DNA of 64,000 bases from Botryllus schlosseri (taxonomy: Eukaryota). Under the pieces are notes generated by a model. It saw only the letters and a program-made list of their open reading frames with translations. It had not been told where the DNA came from and ran no database searches. The translations under genes and the position numbers were made by a program. Positions 20,342-48,373 of this stretch are shown piece by piece (the stretch's first letter is position 1; every line of letters starts with the position of its first letter). The stretch spans positions 5,270,001-5,334,000 of the forward strand of contig CM119383.1 in assembly GCA_051294905.1 (NCBI GenBank), in the 5' to 3' direction.

Positions 20342-22958
20342 ATGGAGATTCTTAACAGATTATTTATCTTACTCGTAATCAACGTGACTTCAGTAAAGCC
20401 GCATTGGTGGTGAGTGACTCTTCGCTAAGCAGCTTCCAAAAGCCTACAATTCAACGTTCAATATATTATTTTCTCAGGTCAATGACTGTGCGGCAGCCGA
20501 CGGACGATGTTGTTTATAGAAGATTCTCAGCGTGCGAGACTGAAGGTCTGTCGCGCAACCAGAAGGCTCTCTGTATGAGATATTACAGCCACATGGGCTA
20601 CGTCAGCGACGGGGCGCGAACGGGGATACATGAATGTCAGCACCAATTCAAAGGTCATAGGTGGAACTGCTCGACTGTGAATGATAATTCCGTCTTTGGC
20701 AAAGTTATCAAAACAGGTTAGTGTGAAAAAACAGATCATTATTGACATGCTCGTACATACAATTCGTTAGTCCGCTGGTCTGATCCGTCTAGCGCACGGT
20801 TTTATGTATGGGAACTCCAGTGCTTTATTTCAATCACACACTGTCGATTGTCGAATTACAAGTGCGATAAGAACCGTGCTAGCACATATAAGTTTTTTGG
20901 GTCTCTCGTAATGAAACCACTTCCTTGTTTTCGGGAATAGCATGACAAAATAAACGTGGGATGTGACCCGGATTGTCGATATTTCATTGGGATAGTACCG
21001 GAACATGATCCACATCTTTTATCTTCACCAGTTACAAGTTTATATACGTGACGAATGTCTAAATATGCATTTGCAGGTAGCAGAGAGACGGCTTTCACCT
21101 ACGCAGTGGCGTCGGCTGGAGTACTGTATTCAGTCGCAAAAGCGTGTCGAGGCGATACTCTGCCTGGGTGTGGATGTAGCGAGCAGGCACGGCCGGAGGG
21201 ACTCAATGAGGATTGGGTAAGAAGTTACAGATATTCACTCAGTTTGTCCTGTACTGTCCGTGCTTAGATCCAGCGAAATTCGTGATCATCGTGGCGAATC
21301 TATACAGTGCTGATATCTAACATTGAGCGTTTGATTGTTCGTATAGGTATGGGACGGATGTGGGGATGATACGAACTACGCCTACGGATTTTCCAGAGAG
21401 TTCATCGACGCGCACGAGCGCGACAATTTGTCCCCGAGAGGAAAAAAGAAGAAGGCCAGGAAACAAATGAACCTTCATAACAACGAAGCTGGCAGAATGG
21501 TAAGTGGCTTCCTATACTGCGGTCTATTCCAACTACATTTGAACATCGTGATGATGCAGGCGTCGATAAGAGACGTTGGCGTCAGCAATTTTATAATTGA
21601 AACCACCTTGTTTGTGGTGGAAACACGAACCTCCCTACTTCTTCAAGTGGGTTCGAGTGCATTGTAATTCAAACATTGCCTACAACCAACTCCAGCGAAG
21701 GTGCCAGTAAATGGAGTTGTTTGTTTCGGAAATATCATAGCATGCGACACCCAGCGGAAACGAGGGTCTACATTTACGTGGGTCGTGTTTAGACGAATTC
21801 CGTATCCACTTATGGTTGTTGCATTGGCCTACTGCAAGAATGCGCAGAGAAATCTTTCCATTCGTATCCTACGCGAGCGAAATTCCATATGTCATACATC
21901 AACGGTCACTTCTGTGTGTATCATTGACAGTGTATATCCAGTTAAACATATTCCCTTAGCTGCTAGTCTTGCAATTGTAAATGTCGTGCATGCCTGCGGA
22001 TAGTCCCATACTACATGTATCTTACACATAACGCAAAGCAACTTGTAATTTATACTGTAAAAATGCAAAAAGGAAGCAAGAATTTCCTTTCCTGACAAGA
22101 GCAGTATCCCGAGTGCCGTTCTTTATAGCAGTGGTTCCCAACGCGTTTTTTAGGCCGACCCTTTTCAAATGATAGTTCAGATCGGTATAATCCTGCGACA
22201 AAAACCAATAGTCATAATATATTTACTGTATGTATACACTACGCAATGTTTCATGTTTCATGGTGTATATATTTTCATTATTTGTGATCTCGTTATGTTT
22301 TAAATTATATTTATATCATTTGTTCGCTTTAGTTACAATACGCCTGAAAAGGCGAACCTAAAAATAATCACGCGATCCACCGAACTAGAGGGTACACGTA
22401 GAAAGTCAATGTCTTTTGCGAGACTATCCTTCACCCTCCATAGTAACCCAATAATTGCAATGCAACAGTAAATAAAGAATATCAATCAATTTCTTCCAGA
22501 TGGTAGTCCGACTAACAAGACCATCGTGCAAATGTCATGGAGTTTCGGGATCGTGCAATTTGAAGAGCTGTTGGATGAAGCTGCCCGATTTCCGACAAGT
22601 TGGCAGCAAGCTGCGACGACAGCACAAAGTCGCCGTGAAAATGACCACCACGAAAAAGGGCACTTTAAAGCCGCGAAGGGCGTCCCACGAGGCACCGGCT
22701 ATAACGGATTTAATCTACATCGAATCGTCGCCCGACTACTGCAAAAAGAATTCCAGGACTGGGGTGCCGGGCACGAGAGGACGCGAATGCGTTTTAAACT
22801 CGAAAGGACTCGACGGGTGCGGGTTGCTTTGCTGCGGTAGAGGGTACACGCAGAAAGAGATAACTTACGACGTTCAGTGTCATTGCAAGTTCCAGTGGTG
22901 CTGCAGTGTTCGGTGCGACACTTGCACGCGGCAGATTACGAAGTATTTTTGCAACTGA
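20342..22958 (+). CDS. Wnt5: Wnt5-like gene B, 352 aa: join(20342..20409,20478..20716,21077..21216,21347..21499,22500..22958)
   Basis: All four introns are GT-AG (68, 360, 130, 1000 nt) and the exons sum to 1059 nt in one frame ending TGA. Protein: signal MEILNRLFILLVINVTSVKPHWW, then [95 protein letters not shown]. 24 Cys. Confidence 0.95.
22129..22170 (+). repeat. Solo hAT/Charlie-type TIR end in intron 4 of gene B
   Basis: CAGTGGTTCCCAAC...GACCCTTTT matches the left end of the 30624 family. No matching right end found. Confidence 0.4.
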
Positions 22959-23364
22959 AACAAATTTCAACTCAGCAAAATCGAAAGGAGCCGGCCGTCG
23001 GACTTCAAGACATCACTGTGAAAGAATGAAGCGGACTTCTGATGACGTACGATCGCGTGTGAAGGGAGATGTATCTTATGAACTCGTGGGCAGCAAATTT
23101 ATGGTTACAATATACTACAGGTAATTTTTCTCCATGGATATAAGGTTTAAGTATATAGTCTTTATAAAGTATACTTATTGCGGACAGGTAATGAACCGCT
23201 GAAATTTGATATGCAGGTTTGAGTGAAGTAATGTTACGAATTATAAATGTAGGAAATTATAAATAGATGAAGGTCGATCCTGCAGGGGCAATTGAGTACT
23301 AAAATTTCGTAGCAAGCCACTTCAAGTCAAAGACACCGTTCTCGCCAACTGTGAAGGTTCCTAT

Positions 23365-23370
23365 AATAAA
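23365..23370 (+). other. Candidate polyadenylation signal of gene B
   Basis: AATAAA ~400 nt after the stop codon. Confidence 0.35.
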
Positions 23371-26300
23371 TCTATCTGTCCTGAGAATTGAAATCAATTT
23401 TCCTTGAAGCCGGAGATCCGGTTTGTCATGATGAAATCATTCCTTTTGACATGGGACGTCAACAAATAATATGGCATGCCGTGTAATTTCGGCAGCACGC
23501 AATTTTACCAGCACATGGGAATCTGAAGTGGAAAAATGTCACCACAATAATAACATGAACTATCATATATTATTGTCATCTGTGAATTCCTTGTGTATAT
23601 TATTATAAGGATCTGTGCACATTTTAATGAAATATTGCTTTATTGAGCAACAGTTAATTAAGTACAGATCAAGTTTTATCCACAAAGATGCTAATGTATG
23701 TTATTGTATTTCAGAATCTTGCTTGCTGTGATACTGCATTGATGATGTATATGCCAGCAAGTCCATCTGTCGGTGCAGCCTGAAAAGTTCATGAATACAG
23801 TTTCACTTAATCACGAAAATATATATTTATTTAATTTAATTATACGCTCAAGTGCGGGATCACCAGAAAAGGGGGCGATATATCAAATAGTTATTTGTTT
23901 GGCTGGCCAAATTTTCATGTATTGTTACAATGCATTTATGATTTTTTCTGTGACTCTACAATACATTTCGCATCGCTTCAATTTCTTCTTTTATATAAAA
24001 TTAAAAGATTCTACATCTTTCTATACTGTCTCATGACTCAAAATAAGTATGCTGTAGCGGACACATTGTCAGCCACCTGCATTCAATCTCTCTGGCAGCA
24101 GCGACGTAGAAAATTCCTACGCGGCCACGATGTGCCAGACAGTATATAAGGTTCGTTGCGTTAGCAATGTGTTAGATTATAAGTAATCCGTTAGTAAACA
24201 GATGGATCTTTAGCTAAAGTGCGCGTTGTCATCAACAAAGCAAAGAAGATATTTCGGGATTTGCATCAAAATATCAAAGAGGCAGCGTATTAATACGGTG
24301 TAACGCCGCCGAGTTAGGGAGAATACTGTGGTAAACCCATGAGAGACCGTTCTGGTTGAAGTATCTGCAGATTTCGAATATCCGCCGCAGTATTATTAAG
24401 CGACAGCAACAAATTGAGCAATATACCCGAAGTTACGATGCAGTTTATTTCTCTTTACGAAAAATACATAATTGCAATCGAAGTCTAATGAATCGTCTCT
24501 AGATTTTACAATATTACACATGTTATCGCTACAGACATATCAAACCACCGTCCTTGACAAAAATAACCTTGCATTGTGGAATTGAATATCACGAAAATGC
24601 TGCTGTCGTTTCTGGTAAATAATTCGGAAAATTTTACACGGTTGTATATCCTATAGAGATTGCGGTGTACGGTTGCGCGTATACGGTGTATAGACAGGCT
24701 GTGTTCAGGCAAGTATTTATTCCGACGTGGGAAAATGCTCCGGTAAAATGCCAGCGAAAATTGTTTTGTTATTGGTATCAACATCCACGGTTGCCACCTG
24801 ATTTTTCAACGTATAGGTTTGTAAATGGTCGAGTGCCTCGATGGTAACATATCATTCATCAAAGCAACGCAACGCTTTATAGCGATTTAATTGAGTAATT
24901 TGGCAAGTTGAAAATCGCTTGTCTTTGATTAAGCTATTTCCTGTTGCACGTTTCGCACGCGACCGCCAAACCCATCATATGAAGATCTAGCTATATTATC
25001 CCTAAAAGCAACAATTCATATTCGTTTCAGCTGATTGATCCGAAGTGAATCCGGATTTTTATCTCAATTCAACTCACGTCTACAATGATCGAACTGTAGC
25101 AGGGTATTAACTCGGTTAACGGCGATAAAATCAGATGTCAATTTTTGATGGGTATAACCCAAAGCATGTAATCGGAATGTTACCTCCATCCGGGCCATTT
25201 TCGAAAAACATTCCTACATTTATAGATCATTTTCATATTGCTTGTTGTCTATGGCGCACTGTGGAGCGAGTTATCCAGACAACAGTAAAGAAAATGCTAG
25301 GAGGATGTCACTTTTCGCACTTGTCACGGTATTTTCATCTCCAGTAAACTGTTAATGAGATTAGAAAAATTTGAAATTTAATAGATTTTAACCGAAACTT
25401 CGCGACGGAGGGAAATTTAACCGCGAATCCCTTATTTTACGTCTTGTAATCTTCATTGAGCAGCGAAGAATCCTAGATGTGCGACTTCAGTCCTGTTATA
25501 GTCAAAAGCACTACAGAATCTGGATTCAATCATAAGTCTTAATGCGTTTATTCCCACGCCAAATTCAAACGACGAGCAATAGTAGTCAGTGAGCTGGCAA
25601 TCTTACATCGTCGCCTCATCAGTCAAGGGCATCATTTTGGCGCAGATATTACTACCTATTCTAGATTGAATCTATATACGGGTTCACGCAACGTTACGGC
25701 GAGCTGTCAAGTCTGCATTTTGATCCATTTTGAATTAGATCAACCGTATTCTATACTAAGACCGCTCGATGGCGCAATGGGTGATATAGTTGAAGACAAG
25801 TTTTCGCTGACTTTACAACCAATCGGCAACCACAATCCATGTTGTAAATAGAACATCTACCCAGGTAATTTGTGCAGTGTGAATATCCATTCGATCCATT
25901 AGAATGTCATTGATAAACTTACACCGATAACGATATATCTGCTTTCTACAACATGCACAATTGCGCGTGAGCATGCACAAATTACACATGACCGAATATA
26001 TTGGCCGTGACAAAACAGAATTCGTCAGGTCACCAGGTATTTTTCGTTCCGAACATTTGCTACTTAATAGCAGGATACCAGCAATATTACCTTTGTTGCT
26101 TCGATACAGCTCAGAAGCGCAAACCGCAAACTACATGAAATTTCAGTCTATATGTTTGATTAGGATTACTCTCTATTTGACTCGTGTTTCGCCGATACAC
26201 TCTATCATACCGTTGAGAAATATCTTTCCGGCACGTGTGGAAATGCCTTGACATTGGAACAATAACGTCTTCTGAGTACAGCTGGGTTGACTGTCGCGTG

Positions 26301-29300
26301 GAAACAGGGGCGGTAAAACGTGAGGAGCACATGTAGGAGAATATCGAATTCCCTAAAATCTTCTTTTATACTGACTCAATATTGTTTCGATAGCAAGAAT
26401 TCGCTCAACCAAGTATTCAGGTAACAGTGGTTGATGGTCAAAGTAAATGGGCTTCTGAAATCCTACTAATCCCTTCGTGCCGAACGGGGTGAGACATTAT
26501 AACTACGACAAAGCCATAGAGCGCTATTGATGACCATATTTGCGCGAAATATATCGACATGATACAAAAACGACATTGCAGGTACGTGATGTAGACGTGT
26601 GAACGATCACGAAATCTACCCGGTTCGTATAATCGATACATCAAATACAGTGTGGAGATTATCACCACATTGTCTTTGATATATGTGGAGATTTTCACCA
26701 CATTACCGAATTTTTCCGCCCATAGAAATGACTTTCTAAAATATTATATCCGAATATAATATAGTTCATGGAACTGTAATGCCATTTTTCAATGCCATTT
26801 CACATTGTTGTAACTTCGATTGTCAATTGGTCGTTTACACCATATAGCCCCATGTGTTACTACCAAATTTCTGTGCTGTCGACTTATGGTATTGTAGGGC
26901 ACAACAAGCGTCTTAGGTGAAGGGACACGAGACAAGACTCAACCCCAAAGCAGTCCATCCGCGACAAATTAGCTAGCCACTGCGCGACTAGCTTCACCAA
27001 TCGGTGGTGTCATCTTTTGTGATAGGATGGAGCTTCCCGTAATCGTCATGGGGCACATATCATGAAAATTTATAGACTGTTGGAACATGAGTTTCCATGA
27101 GAAATGAGTTTGGAGAAAACTACCGCGGATAGATACTGTTAAAATTTGATATCACGATTCAGACGGATTTTTTATATTTCGCTAGATTATTGGGCTCAAA
27201 TATCATACGCTATAGTCTTGTGGCGCACGGTTGTATCAGGTGTCATGAATATGACGTATTCCACCAGCAACCTCCTAGCATTATACCACACATGTAATAC
27301 CAATTGTGAAATACTACCTCATACCACTGAAGGTCGTGAGGGAGACGTTTTTAACTGCTTATTTCTATCTGTTGAGAAGGTGGATGTACTGTACACGTTC
27401 AGCACACGGATACTGTACATTGTGTACAATTGTACGTACATGTTCAATGATCGCAACGATCAATCTGATTTCTCCAGTTGGACTTCACGAAAACACTATT
27501 GAAACGTGTATTTGCTACAATGTACTCAACTCATCGATATAATGAACCAGAGCCTTTATCAGCTTCAATTGCTGAGTAAGCAGATAAAGGGCGGGTTCGT
27601 TCTATTTGCTATTTCGCCACGGAGAGAAGAACAGTTTGAAGCCCCTTTAGAATAGTGAGGTGAAGCTGAAGCGGCCTTGATGACACCATCTTCTACACTT
27701 TAGATTTGTACAGTAAACATGGTTTGTCGGATGGTTATATAAGACACCTTCCGCCTATAGGATGATGACCAGGTGTGTCAACGTTGTCATCAAAATTCAA
27801 TAAAGAATAGTTAATTTACTCGAATGCTGTAAGATCGAATGTTGTCATTTGCGGTGATATATTGGTATTTTAAATTATGCACTCAATAATCCACCATCAA
27901 AGTCAACATGCATCCTCATTTATGATATGCGCTTATCACATGTGCATGTATTGAAGGGTATTGATTTGAATACCCATAATCCCGAATTTAGCAGAAAGTA
28001 TTGTGGCAATCTCGGCATCGTAGATGCAATCGGAAACGGTTGACACGGTGCGTTAATGCTAAATATAATACCGAAGCACACTTTTTCCTGACTATATATA
28101 AGTTCTGTAATTTTATCTGATGATAAGTAATGTGAGTATCAGATGTCTATTGCACAATTTTCCTGGCATTGACAATGACATAATGCCTTACAATCAGACC
28201 AACCGGGTGATATTGAATTTAGTATATCTACTATATTATTAAGTATGTGCTTTCGAATATTCAACACTAATACATTACCCGTCTACAGTACATGTTGGTG
28301 AATCCCAGCGCAAAAACAATCAGCGATAGGCCGATAGGGAATTCACGATAGAAGTTTGCCTTGTTATCACGCGTTGGGTGTTGCCTGTAGGACAAGTGCG
28401 CAATGAGCGCGGGAGTCAGAAATAAGCTTGGTAATGCAAATTAGTATTTAACAGCGAATTGATATTGGCGTTCAATCGTAACTCCACCATCGCCCCATAG
28501 TGACTGAAATCGTAAATTTGGAAAATGCCAGATTTGGTGAAGGCTAGCCTAGAACAATCTCCATTGCTTTTGCCATGACCTGACCAACGGTAACAAAGGC
28601 TAGATATGGGTGAAACTGATCCTTGGGTTAAGTTATGCAAGCCACGTGTAGTGCGATGATGACCGATCAAAATGGCTGACACCATTTCACTCTTAGATTT
28701 GCTGACGCAATAGGCAATTGGATTATCATAGGGGACAGAATTGCTTACACGACTTCAAAGAATAATGATACCGTTGAGCGTTGACGTAGTTTCTAACATC
28801 TCCTGCACAAGTAGAGTTACAACTGCTCGCTAAAACCAGCTGGGATCTTAAGATTAATTTCCGTAATCGGATTTGGGCTGTGAGTATGAATGCTACGTTG
28901 ACGTAACGAATGTAAAGGCTATATGGCGGGGTAGCCAACAAGCTCTAGAAAGAAGAATGTCGTGCGCTCGGTATTCGCAGCCCTCAGAGACAGGGATATC
29001 CGCAACAGATACCAATTTTAAACAAGAATCGGGAAATGTGAAAGATTAGTAGCAAAGGGAAATCAATACCCGAAACTCAAACTGCGCCGAATGGATTTAG
29101 ATGAGATGCATAGTTCTGTAACATATGTCTTGCGATGAACCATCAAGTCTTGCGCATTTAAGGGTGGCCTCTATCAAACCAAGAAATTATGCAATGCTGG
29201 ATTCTGGTGCTGGGCAAACACTAAACATGTATGTAATGTACAGGTCGTATGTATAACTAAAGGCGGACTTTCAATATGCAGATGAACCCGAACCTTAAGT

Positions 29301-30245
29301 CGTATGCCACTAAATGGTGTGAACAATTGAACACCGCACACTGCAAAGCTACACAATGTGCACATGCACATTGCACATGCACAATGCATAATTGAACATG
29401 CGAAATTTGCACATTTACCGATCAACATGTTGTTCATCGGTGATTAATGGAACGTTTACCTGAGAAGGACTGATTGCGCCAAATTAGTCAAAAGGTGGTA
29501 AAAAGTATTGTCCTTGAGATATCCAGTTCTGATTGGCAAATTCATACTGATTGATACATAGCGCACTCTGGTCCTGTGAACGTTCCATTAGTTATCGTAT
29601 ACGACTTGATTCGTTACCAGCGCTGCGATTAAATTAGCTTAACTGTCGCTCGCTATGTGAGTCACGGGCAATGTCATATTAGTATAGTATTTCATCAGCA
29701 CCGTAGCCTTTCCACAGGCGACCGTTGTTCAGGTTTCAGTATTTATCAACTTACTATTGGACCCACGTCGACCGTACTGTGGCCATCAAGGTATATGTTG
29801 TGTGTAAGCAAACCGTATTCTAAGCAAGCTGCATGCTGAAGAACGCAGTCATTCTGATGAGCTGGACACAGTCATTGCACTACCGGTACACACACTAGAC
29901 TTCTGCTACGCCGATCTGCGGTAAGACAGTCGTACATTGCTACAAGGTCGTCGATATAGTCGCGTTCGTTACCGGACTTCTGCGATCTTCTTGCAGTTTG
30001 GCTTGTTTTCGTGTGTAGTGTGCGCGGAATTTCAAATTTGAATTAATCTTGGCACTCACTTTTGTTTGTTGCTCAATGTTCAGTGCTACACCGTTATTGC
30101 AGAAGCGAGATTCTGATCAAGTAACATAGGGATTTGGTAACATCGCCTTGAGCCCCATATACCACGAAGTTACTAGACTTTCCGTGCTCGAATCGCCATT
30201 AATCTCCTGGAAAAGATATCACAGTAGGTATAGTAGGTACTAATG

Positions 30246-31174
30246 CGGGGGTCGCCAACTCAAAACGGGTCGCGCGCCACTTTTCAAATTTCGTAGCGGC
30301 CGCGGGCCGCATGAATTCAATATCGCTATCAAACGGGCAACCACGTTTTAAAAATCAGTCAGTACAACGCTGTGCTACCTAGCATAGGCGATTGGCATAG
30401 TGACCACTCATGCAGTAATACTTCATTAGGGGAATACAAATACAATATAAAATCATTGCCATAAATATTATTTTATTTTGGACTCTGCGTTGTGCAGTGT
30501 GCACGATACCTGAAAACGCTTTTCAGCAACTGAGGAATCGATATTGTGGCTAGCGAGATACGTTCGTTATATGCTGAAAGGCCCTCTCCACGTAAAGCTT
30601 GATCTTGTGAGGAAGCCCTAAGCCGGTGGTTCTCAAACTTTTTTGGACACGGTCCCCTTTATGATACTGAAAAATTTCGCGCCTCCCTTATCGTCATATC
30701 AGAAAATGCAACTAGAATACCAGCAATCCCAACGGATAGTTAGATGGCATGGAAGGTTATGACTGTTGATGAGAGAATTCTATAATATGAATTCCGGATT
30801 ACACACCAAGCAATAACTATGAACTAGAGGTAAATCGCGCGGAGCGCGAAAAAAATCAGTTGACCGCAGCTCCACGCCCTCTTCAGATGCTTACCCCAGT
30901 TTGGGAACCACTACCCTAGGCCGTTTTCCAAGCGTCTCGGTTTTGCCAATCTTTGGGTTAATGCCCGTCAAGACAATATGGCCATTCATATCAGCTGATT
31001 CTCTCTCGATATAATGCTGTTGCCAAAGACTACAACAATATGTTGAAACTGTAGTCAATTTTAGTTTTTCAAATGGTTTTAGCTTTCTTCCGAAATCTCA
31101 AATCAAGTCGCGGGCTGCAAAATATGATCTCACGGGCCGCAGGCGGCCCGCGGGCCGCGTGTTGTTGACCCCTG
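30246..31174. mobile_element. hAT/Charlie-type non-autonomous element containing a nested MITE
   Basis: Ends CGGGGGTCGCCAAC...GTTGTTGACCCCTG. 8-bp TSD TACTAATG at 30238-30245 and 31175-31182. GCGGGCCGC subterminal motifs at both ends. Confidence 0.85.
30624..30913 (+). mobile_element. hAT/Charlie-type MITE nested in 30246-31174
   Basis: Ends CGGTGGTTCTCAAAC...GTTTGGGAACCACTA. Flanks CCCTAAGC and CCCTAGGC (7/8 match). Homologous to 14888-15201. Confidence 0.8.
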
Positions 31175-32164
31175 TACTAATGCGATATATATGTGACATA
31201 TTGCGATTCATCCTGGACTTCTGAATTTTGACATGAAAATTTTCCGCCAGCAGGTCGTAAATAATAGACTTATTTTCGAATTCCACTGTATGACATCACG
31301 GATTCGGTGTTTTGGTACCGAAAGATCAAGTAACCCATGTGTCATAGACAGCCAGACGGTGGTGTCAAAATCGATTATTAAATTATCATAATTTCAGTGC
31401 ATGCAATTAACGCGGTTATATTCTTGCTGTTTTCTCGGTTAGATATTCAGCTTTGATGTTTTGTTCGGGTCAATGGGTTGCGTCATAGTTTTTATATATA
31501 GGTACTCGCAATTGCCCCAAAGGTCATGTCATCTGATCTTGTTCCTCGATACAGCTCCAAAATTGTCGCTAGTTCTTCGGTAACATTTGTGATCTCGGAT
31601 GGCATTCGACGCTTGTGTCATGTTTCATCAACCTTGGATCATGTGATAGCTGTCAAAATCGCTCTATAAACAATGCGACTATTGTATCCTTGATCTAAAC
31701 ACGAATAAAAAGCTTTGATCTTCATTCAGACGTGCCTGGTATATTTTATCCCGTTTAGATTGTCTTCAGCAGGACGGCATTAGACTCCTTCATATCTTAT
31801 TAGCACATCTTACCTAACATATAAAAAGCATATACAATTGCAGGGGTTACGTCACCAGTCTGCTGTGACTGCTGTATCTTGCAACGGTCTTGTGCCGTGT
31901 TTGCTTCAATAGATCATCGACTCACACAATCGCAACAGTAATTATTCATACATACATCAATTTTGAAATAAATATAAATATGTTCACGCACATACCTGCA
32001 TTCTACTCAATGTTCCTTCAACTATGGGTTTTGTGCACTTTGAAGCACATTTGTGACCCAGCAATGGTGTCATAATATTACGAAATTTGTTCAAAATACG
32101 GCCATCACGACCATGGATATTGGATATGCTAGCAAGCTAGCATTTCGAAGTTGTTACACCAGTG

Positions 32165-33885
32165 CAGTGCTTTTCAACCTGTGTGACGGTTCGCACTGGT
32201 GCGAATGAAAAAAATTGCAGTGCGAATGACGAAGGTGGTGCGAATGGTGCGAATGAAAAATCCGGATGAGTGCGAATGAAAATCGTGAATAATTGTTCAT
32301 TTTTCTGATGTGGAATAATTAAAATAAACCTAATAGAAAATGCCAGGGTCGTGTTACTGTTGTAGTTGAGACGCAATTGTAGAAAAATGTTTAATTTGAC
32401 GCACCACTAATCGTAGCCCTCGCAAGCCGTAATGAATTATAGCTTTAGCATTATAATTATTACGTAATCAAAAGCCTGGTTAAGAAGCTGGTGTAGTCGC
32501 AGACATGCAGTTATATTTGTTGAATTTATTGCAAAGATCCTGCCATAGTTTTTACATATCCAAGGGCACTGTGTTGGGTACTGTAGTCAATAAGCGAGAC
32601 ACGCAGAAAATATGGCTTGACCATAAGAATCAGCGGACCTTTGGTTTGAATTCATGATAAGATTTGTCCGATTTTTTTTTCTTCTGGAAAACATGGACGA
32701 AGACCGTTGGGATGAACTAGTGTAGGGGTGTGCAACAAGCGAGTTCAGGCCTATGAGATTCATTCATTTTGAAGGCAACACCTTCTTCGTCGGATCACAT
32801 GAACACGTGAAGTTTCGGCCAACATACCGCTGATGAAATGTGGAGCCGCTGATAAAAGACGGTGCCAAAAACATCAGCGGCGACGAAACCTTGGCCAAAA
32901 ATCACCGTCGCTTAAAGGCCAAACCTTTCGCTATGAATATGCTCCGTTGTCGGCACGGAATAGTCCCGTTCTTGCAATCTGAGTAGACAGTAGTAGGCTA
33001 CAAATGCGACACGCAGAGAAATTTACTTCACCCTGATTTGAAATCGCGTACGTCAGACATATTTTAGAGGTGTGTTTGGTAGAATTGTGGTGTGCGCGTT
33101 CTGTATGTCATACGTGCTCGTAAAATCGAAGCATACTACTGTAATACTAAAAATTAATTTCTTTTCGTAGGTGAGGCTCGGGTTGCGAGATGCCACAAAA
33201 ATGGTGGAAGTCTAAAAATCTACTTTAAGGTTATTAAACTGCTATGTATATTCAAGTAAGATTGAACTAAAGAGTCGATCAAACAGTATCGCGACTTTGT
33301 TTGATCTTCTCATATACTCGTGAGACAGAAAATGGGATATCGAAAAAATAACATAACTCATGATGAAGCAACGTTTCATAAGGTAGCGAGCTCTATTATG
33401 CCTACTCTCCTTGACAGTATTGGAGCTTATTTTCCAAGACAGCAGGCACAAGCCTCAACCCAATCATGTGGATTTTTCACCTTTTCGACAAACTGGAGCC
33501 CCCGGGATCGTTGTGTCATCTCTCAAAACGATTTCTGCCAGCAAGCGTTTTTCATTCGCGGAAAACACGCTGTATTTTGGATAGGAGTGCAGAACAGCTC
33601 TTACGACCTGGCCATCTAAGCACTATGGTCGGCGTTATTGTACAAAATCTGCCGAGAAGCGTTTTAGTGAAATAGTTGAAATCAAAACGAGGGAAAAGAG
33701 TTTCCTTTTTAATGAGACATTTCATGGCGTAGCAGCTATGGTAGGCAATTTGTTACACATATGAATAGAATATTCTGATGTATCTTCTTCTTGTTGTTGT
33801 ATAGCCATTTTCGGTAGGCGTGTGCGAATGAAATTTATTTTCCAAAAAAAGTGCGAATGAAGCTCAAAAAGGTTGAAAAGCACTG
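32165..33885 (+). mobile_element. 1.7-kb internally deleted hAT (Buster/Charlie-like) transposon with a transposase remnant
   Basis: 16-bp TIRs CAGTGCTTTTCAACCT. 8-bp TSD CACCAGTG at 32157-32164 and 33886-33893. GTGCGAATG subterminal repeats. About 33570-33695 reads FWIGVQNSSYDLAI*ALWSALLYKICREAF/SEIVEIKTR, like the Charlie C-terminus FW...YP.LA..AL..L..F.TTYLCE.GFS.L..IKTK.R. Confidence 0.88.
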
Positions 33886-36800
33886 CACCAGTGTATAGGA
33901 TGGTCGAGTAACATGTTGTATTCTTAAAATTCTTACACTATACTATACATTATACAGCCTTGTGTTGGCTATCAAATTCTACCCCTGCAAGTTATGCTAG
34001 GCTAAATAATTGGTATCCTATTATGTATGCAATATCCCTGGCTTATTATGTTTTCAAAACAATCCTAATATTCACAAATAAAATGCCTGTATAAGATATC
34101 TTCTCGCGCCGACTTCCTTGTTGTGGAATATATAGTTGTTTACATCGTGTTCGAGATATGTTATTTGATTGAAGGGCGTCGATCTTGTTTACGGAATGCG
34201 CTTACATATGTTTCAGTCATGATCAGCGATTCTTAATTTGGACGATAAGGCATTATCTGAATTAACCGAAATAGTCAACGCCTGTCGCTCCGGCAACGTG
34301 CGTTGAGTCAAGGCCCTATATTCAACGACTCGACAGTGCATATGCCATGGGCTCCGATGAGGAAAGCATCCCATCTTTATCAGATGAGCTGTTTCTGAAA
34401 TCACACTGTAAATGTAAATGCAGTGTTGGACTGCGCGTTGAGCGATTAGGATAATATTCCAAATATGTTTTTCTATTCGAAAAATATTTTAAGTGAATAG
34501 AAATCTTAGAGCGTATCTTTCGAAACGTGCAGATATTATAAATAATAGCAGTATATCTTATTTTGGTGACATCCCCAAACCTGATGCAAAGAAAATTGGC
34601 CACTGTAACGTGACTATACTGACTACCGACTACCGTACCAGACGCGGATTGCGATATCCATCGGAGTCGTGCGGTCGTGACACTTGCTGTGGTAATAATG
34701 AATATAATTGAACTTTGATCTGCAGAGTATGCATTAGCACTACATGTTGTCTTGGGTAATAATATGGAATTCGACGTGAATATCGATAAAGATGATGACA
34801 TCACAGTTGCGACACCAGACACTACAAACTAAACCTTAACAACAAGAGCCTCTAACTTCCGTCGAACTTATTGTCTGCTGATTATGACTGTTCACGAGGT
34901 TGCCATGGACTCATGGGTATGTCATTCGATTTGATTCCTTTCTATCACAGATACTTTGACGATGTTTTCAATACAATTTGTTGAAGCATTGTCTATGAAA
35001 TTACATTATAGGTATATGCAGGCGATTGACGAAGACATAGGCAGAATGCTATTTTATATTATGTGCAATTTATGCATATATGAAATGTTCATTTTAACAG
35101 GTCCGTCTGCGTATGATCTGGATTGAATATGTGGCATGAGCATATCGATGGTCTTTAATCTTGATTTATCCGGGCTAAGTGCCGGTTGTATAGATTCTAC
35201 CTTCAAGAAATAATTATGCGACTTCGAGCTATGATGCCTGATGATCTGAAGGATATAAACCCGACATCAGACATTTCTGTTTCATCTTTCTCTCTGTTAC
35301 GAAGAAAAACGGTATTTTGCTCGGGCATCTTACCTTAGTTTGCGAGCTTGCAACAATATTTAGAAGAGCTATTGACATTCTTTTCATCATGTACGTCAAA
35401 GCTTTGCGTGGCTCCTTGCGTTTTAAGGTGCCGTAACTTGGAACTTTAGACATACTTCGGATTTGTCAAGCAGTTGCCATTCTGAAAACATGTGAATCTC
35501 CTATGTAATTCGCGTCATCGAATACGTAAGAAAGCGAGTTACAAGTTGGATCGAATTCCGTTTCCATTGTTTTAGGCCACACTTTGAAATGTAGGCTACC
35601 TTTCGTCACTCGTTAAGTGCAACGAGAGATAATCTTTCGCACAAGAATGGGGAGGTTTTCACTATAAATCTAATCTTGAATAAGGTGCGTGTTATTGCAC
35701 TTCATTTCCCTGCGATGCTACACTTGTTGTGACATAGCTTTAACATTAGTATATACAGATCACATATAGAGCAATATTTCACGCACGGTTTCGAAAACAG
35801 TAGCGACACGCTGACTGTTTAGTCGTGGCCGGTCATGCTACAAATTGCGATTTCACGTTAGGTATACTGGTGCTCTGAAAATATTTATCGTCCTGGGTGT
35901 GTGCTTTGTCGTGCGCATGCGCATATATAGAAAGCAATGGCACAGAGTTCATGCTTACTGACCGATCATGTGTTGAAAACAATCTAGAACAGCTTGTGGG
36001 CAACAAACAAATTTCAAAAGTAACGCAAAATGTGTCCAACTCAAAATCAAATATATTCGTGGTTCGATTTAGTGAGAAATTCGCTGTTGCCTTTATGATA
36101 TTACATGTGTTTTTCATTATTCAGAAATTTCTGAAAGGCTGTGGTCCTGTTAAAAACCACTAGCTTTCTTCAAAAGAACTGCGTATTTTCTGTTTGCTAG
36201 CCTCTATTTGTCTATTATATTTCCAAACTTCGCTAAATTTCACTATCGAAATTCAACGAATTTTGCTGGAAAGAGTCTTTTTAGCTTTCACATATAACTG
36301 ACTCTTAGATTAGTTGTGGGGTGTCTTTAAATAGTGTGGTAAAACACTTGAAGCATCGTGACGTATACGAAAATTTGGAAGTAAACCGTATATTACGACA
36401 CCATGCAGAAAATGCGTTACAAATTTCTAAATCAATTTAAGATTCGGTATTCCATTTCTCTAATGAATGAACAAGCGTCCAACTTCTTGTATTTTGCAAT
36501 TGAGACATGAAACTTTAGTATATTTGGCGGTCCGGCAGGAAAGTTGCCACGGACAGACGTCTGAGAAACACTGATCTAGAAGATTGCATCGATTCGTTTC
36601 CCATCTCTACACTTGTAAGCTCATTTTAACTTTAGTCAGTGTCATTTCAATGTTTTGTGGCGATTTCGTGACGCATTTCCAACACGTAATAGCGATTTCG
36701 TCGGATCATTGCCCCTCTTGACCCTGGCGCTCAACTACAAAACACACCGACCTTCATCTCTGTGTAAACCTCTAGCGACAACCTTCACCGGACTAAACTT

Positions 36801-39261
36801 CTGAAAAGTAAGTAGCTCACTTCCAAGCATACGACAGGCTATTCCATGTCGAAATACGTCAATTTCGTGTTTCTCCAAACCTTTAACACGGACTATGCCA
36901 TGGACTAAGTATCCAATATAGAAGACAGACAATTTTTGGATTTTATTTGAGGAAAATGACGAAGTAAAAATGTCTCATGGAAACGAGAATCGTAAAACAT
37001 AAATATGGAATTCAAAAGATATTTGAAACACCTGTTTCTAAATGATAAAGTTTGAAAGGTGGCTTTTATCGGATGAGAATGTGAGCATTTTATGAGTTGC
37101 GATGTAACATCGCCAAAATATTTTTGTCACCTCTAGCAAGTTGTCAGCTCGTTAACACTAACAACTCAACAGATCAAATACTTGCGACATACTTCAAACC
37201 GCACGCAGCAATTTGTTTAGTTTCGGCGGACTACACTTCTGAGTAACTTCGTAATCAGATCTAGTTCATGACGTAGCACCAATAATGGGGTGAAATGCTC
37301 AATTTCCAGTCAAATTGGTGACGGTCTTAATACCCCGACCCTATATATTGTACCATCAGTCACCGAATGAGGAATGTAAATAATTTGACTTCTGCGAATA
37401 CATGTTGGAAAAGTGAGTAAAATTATCGTGGACCCTCTTCAGATCTGCGTCGATTTATCAGGATGTACACTGTACAGCAATAGGAAAATTTCACGGGTGA
37501 TCTGTATCTACGCGAAAAAACAGGCGAACAAAGCGAAAATTATGTCACAGTGATGAACGATTCTAGAACTAAGATGTGTTCTCGCGTGAGGAAGTACTCT
37601 TGTTATCTTTTTAATGAAATTCGCGATGACGATATCGGTGAAGAGTTGCGTTGCGGAGATGTGAGTGGTTCAAAACCTGAAAACATATCAATTTTAAGTG
37701 AAACAATTCGCAAGCATCAGACTCACGCACACGCACAACGTAAATCGACTTGTATTTGAAACTCGTGACACCGTTAGTGTGCAGTTGGATTTCGCCGTCA
37801 CGAAACATGCATTTGCGACAACGCTTCAAAACCTCGTTAATCTATAGTTTGACACGATTTCTCCCGCGGCCCACGGCGCGCACGTGACACCTGACAATTC
37901 CATACGTTACATTGACTAGAGATGTAATCGCCAATGGCTGTATATAGTGCATATGTAACCAATACTTGGAGAAGTTCGATTCACAGACACGATGAGTTGC
38001 ACATGTCTCCGAGAAAAAACGTGGTCCTATTTAACTTACATAATCGGTGATGTAACCTTACACTACGCCGGTGCGTGTTTTTGACATTAGGGTTTCTGTA
38101 ATTTCAACTCAGGCACCATCTTGTGCTCGAAGAATTTGATGGTTCCATCATGTATGCAAAACATATGGGGCTGGCAATGAAGAATGGAGCTATTGCAAAT
38201 TAGAATAACAGTAATGCTTTGTCTAACGTACAAAGGCACATAAACTATTTTCCCGTGATAGATGTACGGGTTTATGTGATGCGGATCAATTTTTATCACG
38301 TTAGGGCGGCCATTAGAACTGCGAGGAAGACAATTTAGCCATTATCACATTAATGGTCTCGCGGGTCTCGGATGTGATATTATCGGCTCTAATACGAAGA
38401 TTATTTTGATTTCGAAAGGATTTTGGTGCGTATTGTGAATGTTATGCTCACGCAAATAACAGCTACAACCTATGCTGCTAGCGCGATGTGTACGGTAGCT
38501 TTCAATTGTACATTATCGTTGTTGCAAATGCTGTATGGTCATTGCTCATTCGTCACTATATGGTACAAAACACATCAATTTAATGTTATTCAGCTAGTGA
38601 CACAAAATCTTTCGGCGGCTAATTCGTAGTTGAGAAAAATCAATACGATATATATAAAAATAGGGCTTCACGGTTCCATCGTGTCGTTACGTTCATGAAA
38701 ACCGCGGCTATGTTTAATTCTACAATTTTGCAAGTAGTCTTGGGACAAAATGCAACAAGTTTATCGTCGCTGTGGAGTCAGAGTAGCTTATGCCCATTTT
38801 ACACATTGTGAGAAAATTAACTTTATGTAAAGTTTTCATTTTCTTTCGGCATTATCTCGGCCATGGTTAACTTCGAAACAATTTGATAAACCCTTCTGTT
38901 TGACAACAAATCAAACTTTTACAAAAACTTGATTTTCTATCAGCTTGAAAACTGGATCTGACGATGTGAAAAACTGGGCATAAGCTGCTTTGATTCCACC
39001 GCGACGTTATGACTCAAGCAATTCAAACATACGCAACCTACCATCAATAGTATCCACCCTTTACATATGGGATGATTACTATTCTTGCACGGCTCCCGTA
39101 TCAGTGAATTCATAATGATGATGATGGATGATTGCGGACTCGAAAAAGAGATGATGTCGTATGCATTCCCCTTACGAAATGTCACAATACTCCATATCCC
39201 GAATGGTATTTGTCACCGCTCAGCGCGGAGATCTGATCAGTTTTTGAGGTTGAGGTTGACG

Positions 39262-42200
39262 TTAGTGACATATATGCTTCGTAATTTCTTCTTTGCATGT
39301 TTCACACTTTACGGTGCAGCACCATTGGAATTTGCAGTTACACTCCTTGTAGATAACAACTTTTTTCTTACTATACCCCCTACCACAGCACAAGAGCCCG
39401 CATCCATCCGCCCCTCTGGATTTTTTGTCACATTCTCTACCTCTCGTTCCTGGAACTCCAGTCCTGATATTCTTGTGACAGTAATCCGGCGAGGCTTCGA
39501 TGTAAACCAAGTCCGTGAGATCCGCTTTCGTGCTTCCATGTCTCGCGGGCCTGCGCACTTTTATCTGTCCTTTTTTGGTTATCCGCATGTCCACGGAGTC
39601 GATATGAGCTTGACGGAGTACCTGCCCTATCGACCGGAAATCAGGCAGCCGATTCCAACAACTTTTCATGTTGCAAGATCCCGATACGCCGTGACATTTG
39701 CAAGCAGGTCTTGCTGATCTCACCACAGTCTGAAAGAAGGAATATAATATTACTGATAGCATTGTGCGGTCGTAGAGCTCCGTACAGCCGCGCATCTTAT
39801 TAACGGTGATTTGCTTTATCAATATATCATGATCAATGATCATATTTCAGGAAGACAGGAGTTGTATACAATAAAAGATACATTCTTGCTATATGTATTG
39901 TATGTAATGGCAAAAACGCGCCAAAGCCGATTAAATACCGAATATATATGCAGGACCACCATATAACATACTTGCTTAAAAATTCGTGGCATATCATTAT
40001 CAAATTGATTCCAATTCTACCACTTAATATGCATAATTTACTCAATTAGGTACCGAGTGACTATATGCACTTCGGTGTACCGAGCAACCTTATTGATTCA
40101 TACACCATAACGAGCTGGTCTCTTTACACCGAATTCCGACTCAGAGGTCATGCGGAGTTATCTGTTTTAATGTGTAGGGATCCAACTACATTGTGAATAT
40201 AGCGCACCGTGTACAGTAAAAAGAACAATGACTCGGATCCCGAGGCATTTCATCAAAGAACTATTGTCGTTTGATCATCACGTTTTATGTTTTAGTTTTA
40301 AATAACTCTGCGCGATCTCGACACCGTTTTTCTGATCCGTATTTGACGCACATTCAGCTTAATAAACTATGACGCTCTGGTGTACCGTTTCTTATCTCAA
40401 CTCAACGTAAGATACATTGCGACGGGATAACGACCGAAATTGAACCCGAAATATTCGGTGAACGCGCCCCGTAAGCTAAATCAATAAACAAAGATAACGG
40501 ATAGTGAAAAACTTTACTGATACAGCTATAAGGGTATAGGTAATAGGCATACTATCAAGGATTTGTCTTCTCCGCTGCCATTTATTGTGATCCAATTGTT
40601 GTTCGAACCGCGCGATTTCAAACACGGTAATTATATCGGTCATATCATCAATAGTGATCTATGCTGCAATTTTGCAAAATATCTGAAAGTAGCGGGCGGG
40701 GCTTTTGTACTTGAGATCACTTTGCATTCGACTGTTTATTTGGATTCGGCGGCAGATGAATGATACGATGCGACTGGTGCGGCGTAACACTGACTCATTT
40801 TGCCGAGTAAATCCGATGTAGTATTTTGATCCCCTAATCAAAATATATGTGACGCGAATGAATATTTTGTTCGTGGCCTCTCCAAAAATTAGCTGTAAGG
40901 TTGGATGTCGAGGTTACCTAATCTCGTTTGTTTTCTCTCTGGGCGCCCCGTTATCGGCAGGGTTCGAAGTCGCTATATTCTTATATGGATCATAAATTGT
41001 GTACACTCATAAAATGTTCAGATAAATTTACTCGTCCAAAGTAGGACGCTACCAACGTTAGTGTAAATCCCTTGAAATATGAGCTTGTCGAAATTGATAT
41101 TTGCAACCTTGTTAACATGATGTTGTTTCGCGAGGGTCTTTGGCCCGGTCGTAAATCCGTAAGAATACATTATTCCTTTCGAGGTTTTGATAATATTTAC
41201 TCGCTGAGTGCTGTAAATCTTTGCCACAAACAACGACCCCTCATATCTCTTCTTTGCTCGGACAATTCCTCACGACCATTTTTGATATTGAGCCATATCC
41301 GATCAATACATATTTTTGATGGGCTTATGGAACAGCATGTCTTGACTCAAATGGAGGTTTTGAAAAAGGCACGCGAGATTTTTCTGAGGCACCAGCATTT
41401 CTAGTGGATATGGCTTACAACCTGTGGTAATTCAGATGCCTCATTTACTACAAAACAGTGCTTATCACCCGTCAAAAGTCCATCTGCATTTGTGTCCTAT
41501 TCAAACCTATTATAAATGTTCAGCTTGTACACGACAATGTAACTTAGCGATAAGATAGACATTTCATTGCTAGAAATTCAACTTCCCTTTGGATCGAACT
41601 AATTCACCGTTATTTCCATAGAAATATGTATCAGAGCGTTTTGATCCGAGGACATTGCAATGAACGATTAACCGCCGATTCCATGCTTATCACCAAATTG
41701 GCATGTCGTGAATTCGAAATCTCGGATTATCGACTCTTATAAGGAATATATCAAACGGTATTTGTTTGCTTTTTGCTACGGTGATTACATGTTATCTCAA
41801 CAGGTGTGTTATTTTGCGTTTTTTTTCCGGGTATATGAACATCGGACAATGAACATGAGACATTGCGTGCAGTGGGCTATGGATATGCTGAAGACGCCAA
41901 TTACATTCAAGCTCTGCGTTCACCCGTCCATTGATTGAAAATTATTTTTTTCATAGAGAACGGGAATCTATTGCCCTAATTCAATCATGATACTGAAGGA
42001 AATTGGTAAAGTTACTCACCATGCGCCCCGCTTCGTTGTTATGTAAATTCATCGCCTTTCGCGCTTTGGCTTTTCGACCTCTTGGGGATAGGTTGTCCCT
42101 TTCGTGGGCGTCAATAAATTCTTGTGCGAAACCGTACGCGTAGCTGGTATCTTCCCGACATCCTTCCCAGCTCTGAAATACGTCTATGTCAGGCTACGGG

Positions 42201-45200
42201 GATACGACTTCAGATATCTACTTAATAATGAAATCGTATTCAAGTGGGACTATTGGAAGAGTGCCCAGAATATATGTGCGTACCCAGTCTGGTTGTAGAC
42301 CTTTTGGTCGCGGTTTCGTAGTGCAGCCACACTCCAAATGTCCGGTCTGACATGCTTTTGTGACAGCGTGCACTACACCGGCTGAGGCAACGGCGTAAGC
42401 GAAAGCGATTTCTTTACTTCCTGAAATGTAGGTTAGCAATATTTTACCACCCAAAACAGTTAGATTTGAACGGTGTCTATTTTGGATATTGTAACTACGG
42501 AAATGACTAAACCAGACACACGTTGCTAGATGGGTTTTCACTACAGTGCTATCGACAATTTTATCGGTTATATTCTGTTTTCAGTGGTACTTCTCAATTA
42601 CACTCCATAAAACGGGAAACTTGTTCACTTCCTAATGCCGTTGTCAATTGCACAGTCATGGGGGGCCTGAGTAATAACAAGGGGTCGTAAAAATAACTCC
42701 CTAATCGCCCGATGACATCAGAACGCTTCATCAAAATTATGTCAGTGTCGACTCGTAACGATCAACACGGATTCGTAGAAGAATTGGTGTAACCATTACT
42801 GAGATAAACGGTTACTATTTCGTATCGACGTTATCATTCGTATTTTAGGGAGAATGTGGGCATAGTGTCCTATATGGTGTCGACACAAGCAAATCGCACG
42901 GTTCAATGAAATTGTATCACGTCACAGTTTCCATTTGGCTACAGGCAATTTGACGGTGATTTTTGACCGACTTGCCGAGCGTTAAATTTGATGAATCGGG
43001 TATCAATCGAAAGCTGACGCTGTGCTGCTTGCGAAAATATAAATTTTATTCCGCTCATGGCCCTGGAACCCCCACAATCTGCCGCAAATTATTCATTGTC
43101 TAGTAGATTGGGAGTGTGACGCAACAATGATGTCTGGCGAAACGTGAAACTAGCTCAAGAGCAAGGATGCGGCCGAGCGGCGAGAGTGGGATCAGCTGAC
43201 GTGACGGCAATAGCAGTGTGCAAACGCGCCACAGAGAAACGCTGCGCTGTTGATACCTTTTCTATGCGTTTCGGTACAAGCGAGCACACACCAGCCTTTC
43301 CTTGACTTGTAAGGGTAGAACTGGGTCCACGGAATGTATTAGGGCCCTACCAATTTTCGCGCAATATCCTTCAGCTGATAGGGATATGTAGGCTACATCT
43401 AAGTAGTCTACATTGGATATGTCAGATTATTATGATATCGATTGCCTTAGCCCGCTTGTTGCGTAGGGCTCCAGAGACACGTCGCGCTGTTGATGGTGGG
43501 TGTCGATACTTTCTATAGTCACTTTTATGGTTAAGTGTGAGCAAGGAGCATTGAGCATGAGCATACATTACAAGCTTTTATTTGATCCGTATGGGTAGGA
43601 CTTGGTCCGCGAATGCAGCAGGTAAAATGTTGATTGTTGAATAAAGTTTAACAGCAGGAGTGTCGAATTATACTGGTATCGCTGTCCGGATTCAATCCGT
43701 TACTAGAAAGCTTGCGGGCCATACCTGCCAAATGATTCCAAAATGTTACCACCAAATTCATACCTTTGTTTTTCACTGGAATATATCTCATATCACTATA
43801 AACGTTGACGTTGGAATTTGGTTTAGCATTTTTCAATCACCAAATAGTTTTTTTGAATGCCGGGGACCTTTTGCGTCAAAAGTAATACAGTGGTATCACA
43901 GATATTTGAATTATATTCATTCTGTAGCCTGTATATATATTCCTAATGTAACTTACGTAAAACGGATTTGCAGTATTTTTTTCGCATCTGTGAATAACTG
44001 AATGTCCATTCGGCCCAACAGAGTTTGCACTTTTTCGCCTTCTCGGAATTTGGCCTCAAGGTCACCGACGTGGTGCTTATGGGGACTAGAGTGAAAACTC
44101 AACACTGTAGTTGTATTACTACAATATGATATATTTACATTATCTAAATTTGCTGTCTTGAGTGAATCTTATTACTTGAAAGTATATTTTTCTTACTAGA
44201 AATATCTTTAACAGCTGAAGGATTGCGCGAAAATTGGTAGGAACCAAATACATTCTGTGGACCCAGTTCTACCATTACAAGTCAAGGAAAGGCTGGTGTG
44301 TGCTCGCTTTTAGCGAGGCGCTTAGAAAAAGTATCAACAGCGCCACGCATCTCTGGAGCCCTACGCAACAAGCGGGCTAAGGCAATCGATATCATAATAA
44401 TCTGACATATCCAATGTAGACTACTTAGATGTAGCCTACATATCTCTATCAGCTGAAGGATATTGCGCGAAAATTAGTAGGGCCCTAATACATTCCGTGG
44501 ACCCAGTTCTACCCTTACAAGTCAAGGAAAGGCTGGTGTGTGCTCGCTTGTACCGAAACGCATAGAAAAGGTATCAACAGCGCAGCGTTTCTCTGTGGCG
44601 CGTTTGCACACTGCTATTGCCGCGACGACAGCTGATCCCACTCTCGCCGCTCGGCCGCATCCTTGCTCTTGAGCTAGTTTCACGTTTCGCCAGACATCAT
44701 TGTTGCGTCACACTGCCAATCTACTAGACAATGAATAATTTGCGGCAGATTGTGGGGGTTCCAGGGCCATGAGCGGAATAAAATTTATATTTTCGCAAGC
44801 AGCACAGCGTCAGCTTTCGATTGATACCCGATTCATCAAATTTAATGCTCGGCAAGTCGGTCAAAAATCACCGTCAAATTGCCCGTAGCCAAATGGAAAC
44901 TGTGACGTGATACAATTTCATTGAACCGTGCGATTTGCTTGTGTCGACACCATGTAGGACACTATGATGTGGGTTTCGTTTTGTTGATTCATGCAATTGT
45001 GACGTATAATATCGTGACAGTTCAGATTTAGGGATATGATCCATTTTAACGATCGTGCCAATGGCGTAACATCTACGAAGTTATTTACCTTGATACGAAC
45101 AGTTTCAGTTGTTGTTTTCGCAATGAAGGTAACATATTTGTTTTTCCAACCTGTCCCAGATTATAGTTCGTTTCTTCAGTAAATACAAGGCCATAGAAAG

Positions 45201-48200: not shown

Positions 48201-48373
48201 AACTATTGACAGAGCCCCCTCGGCAGTAGCGTGTTTGAATAATTGGTCCTCTTTGCATTGAGCTCAACCATCGTAATTCAAAAGACTTACCACCAATGTG
48301 CGGACGCTTCTTCGACCATGATAACCATTACAAGCGTAAAAACAATCGCAACTTTGCTAGATCTCGTATCCAT
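39262..48373 (-). CDS. Wnt5: Wnt5-like gene C, 361 aa: complement(join(48373..48291,45773..45529,42420..42284,42172..42020,39729..39262))
   Basis: GT-AG introns (2517, 3108, 111, 2290 nt) at the same positions and phases as gene B; exons sum to 1086 nt. Signal MDTRSSKVAIVFTLVMVIMVEEASAHWW, then [54 protein letters not shown]. 24 Cys. Confidence 0.93.
42861..44966. mobile_element. 2.1-kb foldback element with ~634-bp TIRs and 7-bp TSD (P-superfamily/Galileo-like, non-autonomous) in intron 2 of gene C
   Basis: 42861-43494 is the reverse complement of 44333-44966 with roughly a dozen substitutions. Termini are CATAGTG...CACTATG. TSD ATGTGGG at 42854-42860 and 44967-44973. A ~238-bp-period internal duplication (44212-44343 vs 44450-44583). 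No transposase ORF. Confidence 0.9.
46245..46735 (-). pseudogene. Possible decayed coding fragment with an RRM-like motif (PARP14/NMI-like) in intron 1 of gene C
   Basis: A single frame with several stops reads KFSGVSGRGTDENILEIYFTANV*TV*GIELTFRQPAALVVVFK, resembling the VSG.....DE..LELYFEN....G..E.......A.V.F pattern. Recognised by eye only. Confidence 0.3.

Follow-up and report, generated by a model that had tools for sequence, protein, structure and literature searches.

Acidic replacement of the first glycine of the hairpin-1 motif in two tandem Wnt5 paralogues of Botryllus schlosseri: probable drift in a fast-evolving array

Hairpin 1 of Wnt proteins carries the motif W-x-W-G-G. In a 64,000-nucleotide stretch of the colonial ascidian Botryllus schlosseri (assembly GCA_051294905.1, contig CM119383.1, positions 5,270,001 to 5,334,000; the window hereafter), two Wnt genes, B and C, retain the Trp pair of this motif and have replaced its first Gly, by Asp in B and by Glu in C. 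A third gene in the window, D, retains the Gly. The question raised by this locus is whether the two acidic residues mark a change in how these ligands are exported, or whether they are changes of little consequence. Judging by sequence comparison, B and C are probably functional Wnt5 ligands of an already known tandem array in which the Gly was exchanged by lineage-specific drift at a loosened site; an acidic adaptation common to the two is probably not the explanation. The genes, the tandem expansion and the expression of one gene (C) have been published previously. The only point not remarked on before is the presence of an acidic residue in two paralogues at a site that is Gly in 98% of Wnt5 proteins.

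In the exon 2-5 models of B, C and D, every border is GT-AG (Table 1). Exon 3 of each gene closes in D-W before its GT donor, which gives the whole motif as W-x-W-(D/E/G)-G-C. Exon 4 of B begins GTA TGG GAC GGA TGT GGG GAT GAT (21347-21370; V W D G C G D D), exon 4 of C begins AGC TGG GAA GGA TGT CGG GAA GAT (minus strand, 42172-42149; S W E G C R E D) and the corresponding exon of D begins GAG TGG GGT GGA TGT GGC GAT AAC (minus strand, 59228-59205; E W G G C G D N), as an earlier note on this DNA had read them. That note also held sequencing error to be unlikely, and both error and mis-splicing are now excluded for the two genes. For B, transcript contigs from three runs belonging to three studies join 20409/20478, 20716/21077, 21216/21347 and 21499/22500, raw RNA-library reads span the last of these joints (exon 4/5), and the transcript pieces of the two runs listed have no differing letters in exon 4. 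From the spliced contigs and the open reading frame (ORF), exon 1 of B encodes MEILNRLFILLVINVTSVKPHWW. For C, four published ‘wnt5A’ primers (Di Maio et al. 2015; PMC4499891) fall in exons 2, 3 and 5, none of them with more than one mismatch. The 722-bp fluorescence in situ hybridization (FISH) probe of that study is fitted exactly by exons 2-5 of our model (244+137+153+188), and the 149-bp quantitative PCR (qPCR) amplicon by 76+73. Primer mapping and product sizes thereby identify C as the germline-expressed ‘wnt5A’. B corresponds to the Bsc_Wnt5a_3 row of Somorjai et al. 2018 (PMC6060547, Additional file 2), with an identical N-terminus. Their alignment, made from an earlier assembly, contains the rows VWDGC-GD-DTNYAYGFSREFID and SWEGC-RE-DTSYAYGFAQEFID, with the same residues as B and C, and two slightly differing B-like rows are present in it. 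No alternative splice acceptor could restore WGGC: the exon borders are backed by the B contigs and the C product sizes, and in contiguous exon DNA the acidic codon stands between those for Trp and Gly-Cys.

B, C and D belong to a larger set. A genome search with exon 4 of D returned two additional Wnt5 copies, Z and A, just upstream of the window, and modelling of this DNA found both to be intact. Together the genes form a five-gene Wnt5 tandem array on contig 13, in the order Z, A, B, C, D, with orientations + - + - - and a length of ~87 kb. The first Gly is acidic in two of the five genes (B and C), and the Asn of WGGCxDN is replaced by Asp in three (A, B and C). Tandem expansion of Wnt5 in Stolidobranchia has been described earlier (PMC6060547; PMC5882950, Blanchoud et al. 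2018), and the stolidobranch paralogues (Styela clava, Halocynthia HrWnt-5 and the Bsc_Wnt5a rows) have the same exon-intron structure and tandem arrangement as the window genes.

Membership of the Wnt family is clear from matches to the Pfam wnt domain (PF00110), which exceed the cut-off of 20.3 bits for both exon 5 (E 1e-54 to 1e-57) and exon 4 (E 5e-10 to 1e-11) of B, C and D. Human Wnt-5a is the best solved relative of exon 4, at 55 bits and in a gap-free alignment. Alignments of Wnt3, Wnt3a, Wnt7a and Wnt8 to the same exon require an 8-residue gap, and the loop from hairpin 1 to NNEAGR thus has Wnt5 length. Ascidian Wnt5s (Ciona, Clavelina, five Styela clava ‘Wnt-5-like’ proteins and Halocynthia) head the results of an exhaustive profile search and two word searches, and among the best 120 matches of the two word searches nearly all named proteins are labelled Wnt5, 5a or 5b. 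The window's own proteins were not among the matches of the word-based protein searches, in which relatives reached at most 74% identity. Placement in Wnt5 as against other subfamilies is based on these searches and on the published Bsc_Wnt5a assignment.

In their other parts, the two proteins have what a Wnt5 ligand is expected to have. Each of the five paralogues has 24 Cys encoded in exons 2-5, the number also present in Styela P0155. B and C retain the CKCHGVSGSC acylation motif, both hairpin-1 Trp and an N-terminal HWW, and the FQWCC that forms the W-C-C tip of hairpin 3 is present in B, C and D. Human WNT5A, which is about 50-55% identical, has the WxW anchors, the length of the loop after hairpin 1, the lipidation and WCC motifs and HWW in common with B and C. 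It differs in reading W-L-W-G-G-C-G-D-N where B has W-V-W-D-G-C-G-D-D and C has W-S-W-E-G-C-R-E-D. With the first Gly set aside, B and C are thus predicted to be ordinary lipid-modified Wnt5 ligands in all features scored.

This inventory also bears on the idea that B, C or both are decaying duplicates in which the motif change is a symptom. Long terminal branches (given below) and 10 non-synonymous changes among the B transcript variants would suit such decay. Against it stand the open frames, the canonical splice sites, the retention of all 24 Cys, the Trp pair, the lipidation motif and WCC, and the finding that both genes are transcribed and correctly spliced. The variants of B comprise 13 synonymous and 10 non-synonymous changes, none of them listed in exon 4, although there are about three times as many non-synonymous sites; as a rough measure, this ratio indicates purifying selection. 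The paralogues are, moreover, old (synonymous sites between B, C and D are saturated, and pairwise NG86 comparison returns no estimate) and yet intact. We reject decay as very improbable.

How unusual the replacement is depends on the set of Wnts with which it is compared. The earlier note had called WGGCxDN near-invariant. This proved overstated for Wnts at large and correct for the first Gly within Wnt5. Among 69 Wnt cluster representatives, picked by exon 5 alone and hence blind to the motif, the first Gly site holds G in 53, S in 11, E in 2, and D, K and A in one each. The site is therefore variable (non-Gly in 16/69), although acidic residues are not common at it (3/69). The Asn site is N in 41, D in 23 (33%), H in 4 and F in 1. 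In a published chordate alignment, 31 of 218 motif instances are non-Gly (WGGC 187, WSGC 12, WAGC 11, WDGC 4, WEGC 3, WKGC 1). We take WSGC to be the signature of vertebrate WNT4 and, by inference, assign the WAGC sequences to amphioxus; the label Wnt4-like is given here from the sequence signature alone. In the Wnt5 subfamily, by contrast, the first Gly is kept in 131 of 134 clusters (98%) and is acidic in none, and two of the three exceptions are ascidian. Replacement of Asn by Asp is thus commonplace, and occurs in several ascidian Wnt5s, including paralogue A of the array. An acidic residue in place of the first Gly is rare (about 3-4% of Wnts) but recurrent, and B and C are unusual for Wnt5 in having one.

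Acidic residues at the first Gly site are found elsewhere in Helobdella robusta T1FP01 (WEGCGDD), in a Wnt-5b-like protein of Corticium candelabrum (WEGCSDD) and in one further transcript. Other cases are WDGCSAD in a lamprey/shark/Asymmetron alignment and an ascidian WDGCND row beside Ciona WntA. Wnts that naturally do without the first Gly have, like B and C, a side chain after the second hairpin-1 Trp, acidic in some, and are otherwise complete; they differ from B and C in belonging to other subfamilies or phyla, and are of independent origin. No ascidian Wnt5 in the sample other than B and C has an acidic residue at this position; one relative has Lys and another Ala. The Lys occurs in a transcript reading WKGCGDD (Logan contig of SRR32906210, P0158 in our tree), which is nearest to C at 74% identity. 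The Ala occurs in a transcript reading WAGCGDN (contig of ERR14799794), which clusters with phlebobranch/aplousobranch Wnt5. Between its two Trp, hairpin 1 has S, K, V, S and E in Z, A, B, C and D, respectively, all polar or small, whereas this residue is Leu or Ile in 111 of 134 Wnt5 clusters. Somorjai et al. 2018 and Blanchoud et al. 2018 make no comment on the hairpin-1 motif in the parts covered, and a literature search for ‘WGGC’ or for a human WNT1 Gly variant in the hairpin-1 motif found nothing usable.

The paper on the structure of Wnt5a with its carrier Wntless (WLS) (2026; PMC13434646; PDB 9z67, 9z4h) terms the hairpin-1 WXWGG conserved. In that structure, W177 of Wnt5a enters a basal cavity of the WLS luminal domain, and W179 packs on the luminal end of WLS transmembrane helix 2 (TM2) and makes a pi-cation contact with the choline head group of phosphatidylcholine. 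Ala in place of W177 or W179 strongly reduces surface delivery and carrier-mediated release (PMC13434646). The placement of WxWGG in hairpin 1 and its involvement in WLS docking, as claimed in the earlier note, are thereby borne out: the two Trp dock, and they are needed for surface delivery and release. Neither this paper nor a molecular dynamics preprint makes a statement on the hairpin-1 Gly residues themselves. The new charge in B and C comes directly after the Trp equivalent to W179.

An adaptive explanation can be built on these facts. The acidic side chain would alter docking of hairpin 1 to Wntless or to the lipid head group, the strength of the hold, or the hand-over to carriers, and would give the ligands a new range or niche. 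The near-fixation of Gly in Wnt5, the complete absence of acidic residues there, the packing of W179 on TM2 and the loss of surface delivery and release on its mutation (PMC13434646) speak for it, as do the occurrence of acidic residues in two paralogues of one array by way of different codons and the restricted, vasa-like germline expression of C. In FISH, the ‘wnt5A’ signal lies in germline precursors of the primary bud in a pattern like that of vasa (PMC4499891). On the other side, the nearest relative of C carries Lys, of opposite charge, the Styela orthologue of B keeps Gly, Ser, Ala, Asp, Glu and Lys all occupy this site in other, presumably functional, Wnts, and the whole of hairpin 1 appears loosened in ascidian Wnt5s, where the inter-Trp residue is polar and not the usual Leu or Ile. 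We regard adaptive change in hairpin 1 as rather unlikely. The more specific proposal that B and C are short-range or differently released ligands through retuned Wntless docking or hand-over, with C acting in a germline stem-cell niche, is more doubtful still.

The history of the change was traced in a careful maximum likelihood tree that held Wnt5 sequences only. The ascidian clade containing the window's genes has support of 100/100. Z and A each cluster with one Styela and one Halocynthia gene and are therefore older than the split of B, C and D, which lie in a styelid-only clade (100/99) alongside three Styela clava genes. Within it, B pairs with Styela clava P0155 (WGGCGDD; 98/97), C with transcript P0158 (100/100) and D, weakly, with Styela P0156 (91/71). 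The shared B+C branch supposed in the earlier note is thus not recovered, B and C not being sisters in the best tree. This tree implies two losses of the Gly in the styelid clade and three among ascidians. Terminal branches of the five Botryllus paralogues measure 0.38-0.83 against 0.14-0.26 in their nearest relatives, a 2.5-5.6-fold difference, and within the window they decrease from D (0.75) to B (0.67) to C (0.38). The whole Wnt5 family is fast-evolving in B. schlosseri, and the sequences suggest that the Gly was lost separately within this lineage. Given the saturated synonymous sites and the lack of a B+C branch in the best tree, a branch-site test is not meaningful for such old paralogues.

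The alternative is a single loss of the Gly in an ancestor that B, C and P0158 share, followed by shifts among Asp, Glu and Lys, which would make B and C members of a derived styelid subgroup. When B, C and P0158 were held together, an approximately unbiased (AU) test did not reject the grouping (p 0.228, log-likelihood difference 7.15), the group having been named after the tree was seen. B and C are also neighbours in the array, and gene conversion and complex histories have already been suspected for the stolidobranch Wnt5 clade (PMC6060547 / PMC5882950). The best tree, with its well-supported pairings of B with a Gly-bearing Styela gene and of C with P0158, nevertheless opposes a single loss. 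The codons do so as well: B has GAC at the site, C has GAA, P0158 AAA and P0154 GGA; GAC and GAA differ by a transversion, while each is one transition from a Gly codon. Finally, at 63% identity B and C are no closer to each other than either is to D (59%). A single loss is accordingly unlikely in our estimation.

Drift at a loosened site is the explanation we favour. In this account, constraint on the site would have been loosened in the fast-evolving ascidian Wnt5 duplicates, after which the Gly could drift. The two genes probably changed separately, each by a single G-to-A transition, B from GGY to GAC and C from GGA to GAA, and the lineage of C may have passed from GGA through GAA to the AAA of P0158 with one transition per step. 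Drift is preferred over a shared innovation because the nearest relative of C has Lys and the Styela orthologue of B has Gly, and because other ascidian Wnt5s show Ala and a polar inter-Trp residue while Wnts of other kinds are non-Gly here, some of them acidic. Wntless presumably still carries B and C, and any shift in docking or release would be no more than quantitative; we infer this because both Trp anchors are kept and other Wnts have residues other than Gly at this position.

Several observations weigh against neutrality. Retention of the first Gly in 131 of 134 Wnt5 clusters, with no acidic replacement, speaks of strong constraint outside tunicates. Selection could account for the occurrence of two acidic replacements in a single array, and a charge placed right after the Trp that packs on TM2 and contacts the head group could matter. 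The AU test leaves a single ancestral Gly loss common to B and C standing. Saturation of the synonymous sites of the paralogues, finally, means that the ratio of non-synonymous to synonymous rates is not estimable.

Should the residue affect Wntless docking or release, B and C would be ready-made natural variants with which to test hairpin 1 in Wnt export. If it has no effect, which we think likelier, they add another case of loose sequence constraint on tunicate Wnts. Overall, the acidic pair is a modest curiosity, in that the genes are intact, expressed and published and the site tolerates other residues in other Wnts. For practical purposes, the ‘wnt5A’ of Di Maio et al. 2015 (PMC4499891) was taken there as the single Wnt5A orthologue, whereas here it is one of five and reads WEGCRED; studies of Botryllus ‘Wnt5A’ should specify which of the five paralogues is meant.

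Gene D, which retains WGGC, had been regarded in the earlier note as the canonical-looking member of the group, with B and C as its possible modulators. It does not serve well as a reference. In exon 5 (57148-57119, minus strand) D has exchanged His for Asn within the C-x-C-H-G-x-S-G-S-C of the acylated hairpin 2, and its terminal branch is longer than those of B and C. The His is kept in 270 of 272 other instances of the lipidation motif; the sole other Asn is in Halocynthia roretzi Q8T8A8, and one instance has Gln. The His-to-Asn change of D is thus rarer than the hairpin-1 changes of B and C. Because D carries this change in its acylated hairpin, the proposal that it is a canonical-looking ligand modulated by B and C loses weight.

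Table 1. Features of the Wnt5 array. Positions are those of the window unless preceded by C13, which denotes contig 13.
Feature	Position	Strand	Remarks
Gene Z	C13:5246650-5251931	+	Hairpin-1 reading SWGGCGDN
Gene A	C13:5257295-5270664	-	Hairpin-1 reading KWGGCGDD; portion outside the window C13:5257295-5264057
Gene A, exon 2	432..664	-	Sole part of gene A inside the window
Gene B, exon 1 coding part	20342..20409	+	MEILNRLFILLVINVTSVKPHW + 2 bases; signal peptide and HWW; contigs join 20409/20478
Gene B, exon 2	20478..20716	+	GT-AG model; junctions in contigs of runs X1, X2 and X16
Gene B, exon 3	21077..21216	+	Terminates in ...NEDW, the first hairpin-1 Trp
Gene B, exon 4	21347..21499	+	VWDGCGDD...NNEAGRM; hairpin 1 and Wnt5-type loop; Pfam wnt E 9.5e-12
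Gene B, Asp codon GAC at the first Gly site of WGGC	21353..21355	+	
Gene B, exon 5 with stop	22500..22958	+	CKCHGVSGSC lipidation hairpin, FQWCC hairpin 3; Pfam wnt E 9.7e-57
Gene C, exon 1 coding part	48291..48373	-	MDTRSSKVAIVFTLVMVIMVEEASAHW + 2 bases; prediction only, from ORF, GTAAGT donor and HWW|S junction as in B
Gene C, exon 2	45529..45773	-	GT-AG model; published probe and qPCR primers located here
Gene C, exon 3	42284..42420	-	Terminates in ...QPDW; qPCR primer at 42348-42367
Gene C, exon 4	42020..42172	-	SWEGCRED...NNEAGRM
Gene C, Glu codon GAA at the first Gly site of WGGC	42164..42166	-	
Gene C, exon 5 with stop	39262..39729	-	Probe primer at 39542-39561
Gene D, exon 1 coding part	62452..62537	-	+ 2 bases; alternative upstream Met at 62606 possible; prediction only
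Gene D, exons 2-5	60753-60512, 60444-60305, 59228-59076, 57187-56729	-	Span 56729..60753

Some further features of these genes were recorded. Exon 1 of B, C and D closes in H-W-W (20400-20409, 48291-48300 and 62452-62461, respectively), followed by Ser. The codon of the last Trp is split in all three, being completed by the first base of exon 2. This HWW is the N-terminal tandem-Trp helix known from descriptions of the long isoform of Wnt5a.

In exon 5 of B (22538-22937), the contigs of different runs depart from the assembly at many positions. Counting codons from the first full codon of exon 2, codon 323 shows three different changes and codon 259 shows two, which suggests that B exists as several divergent alleles or near-identical copies.

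Intron lengths vary greatly among the three genes. Intron 1 measures 68 bp in B as against ~2.5 kb in C and 1.7 kb in D. Intron 2 of C, between 45529 and 42420, holds a foldback transposon at 42854-44973, which helps to explain its length of ~3.1 kb, compared with 360 bp in B and 67 bp in D.

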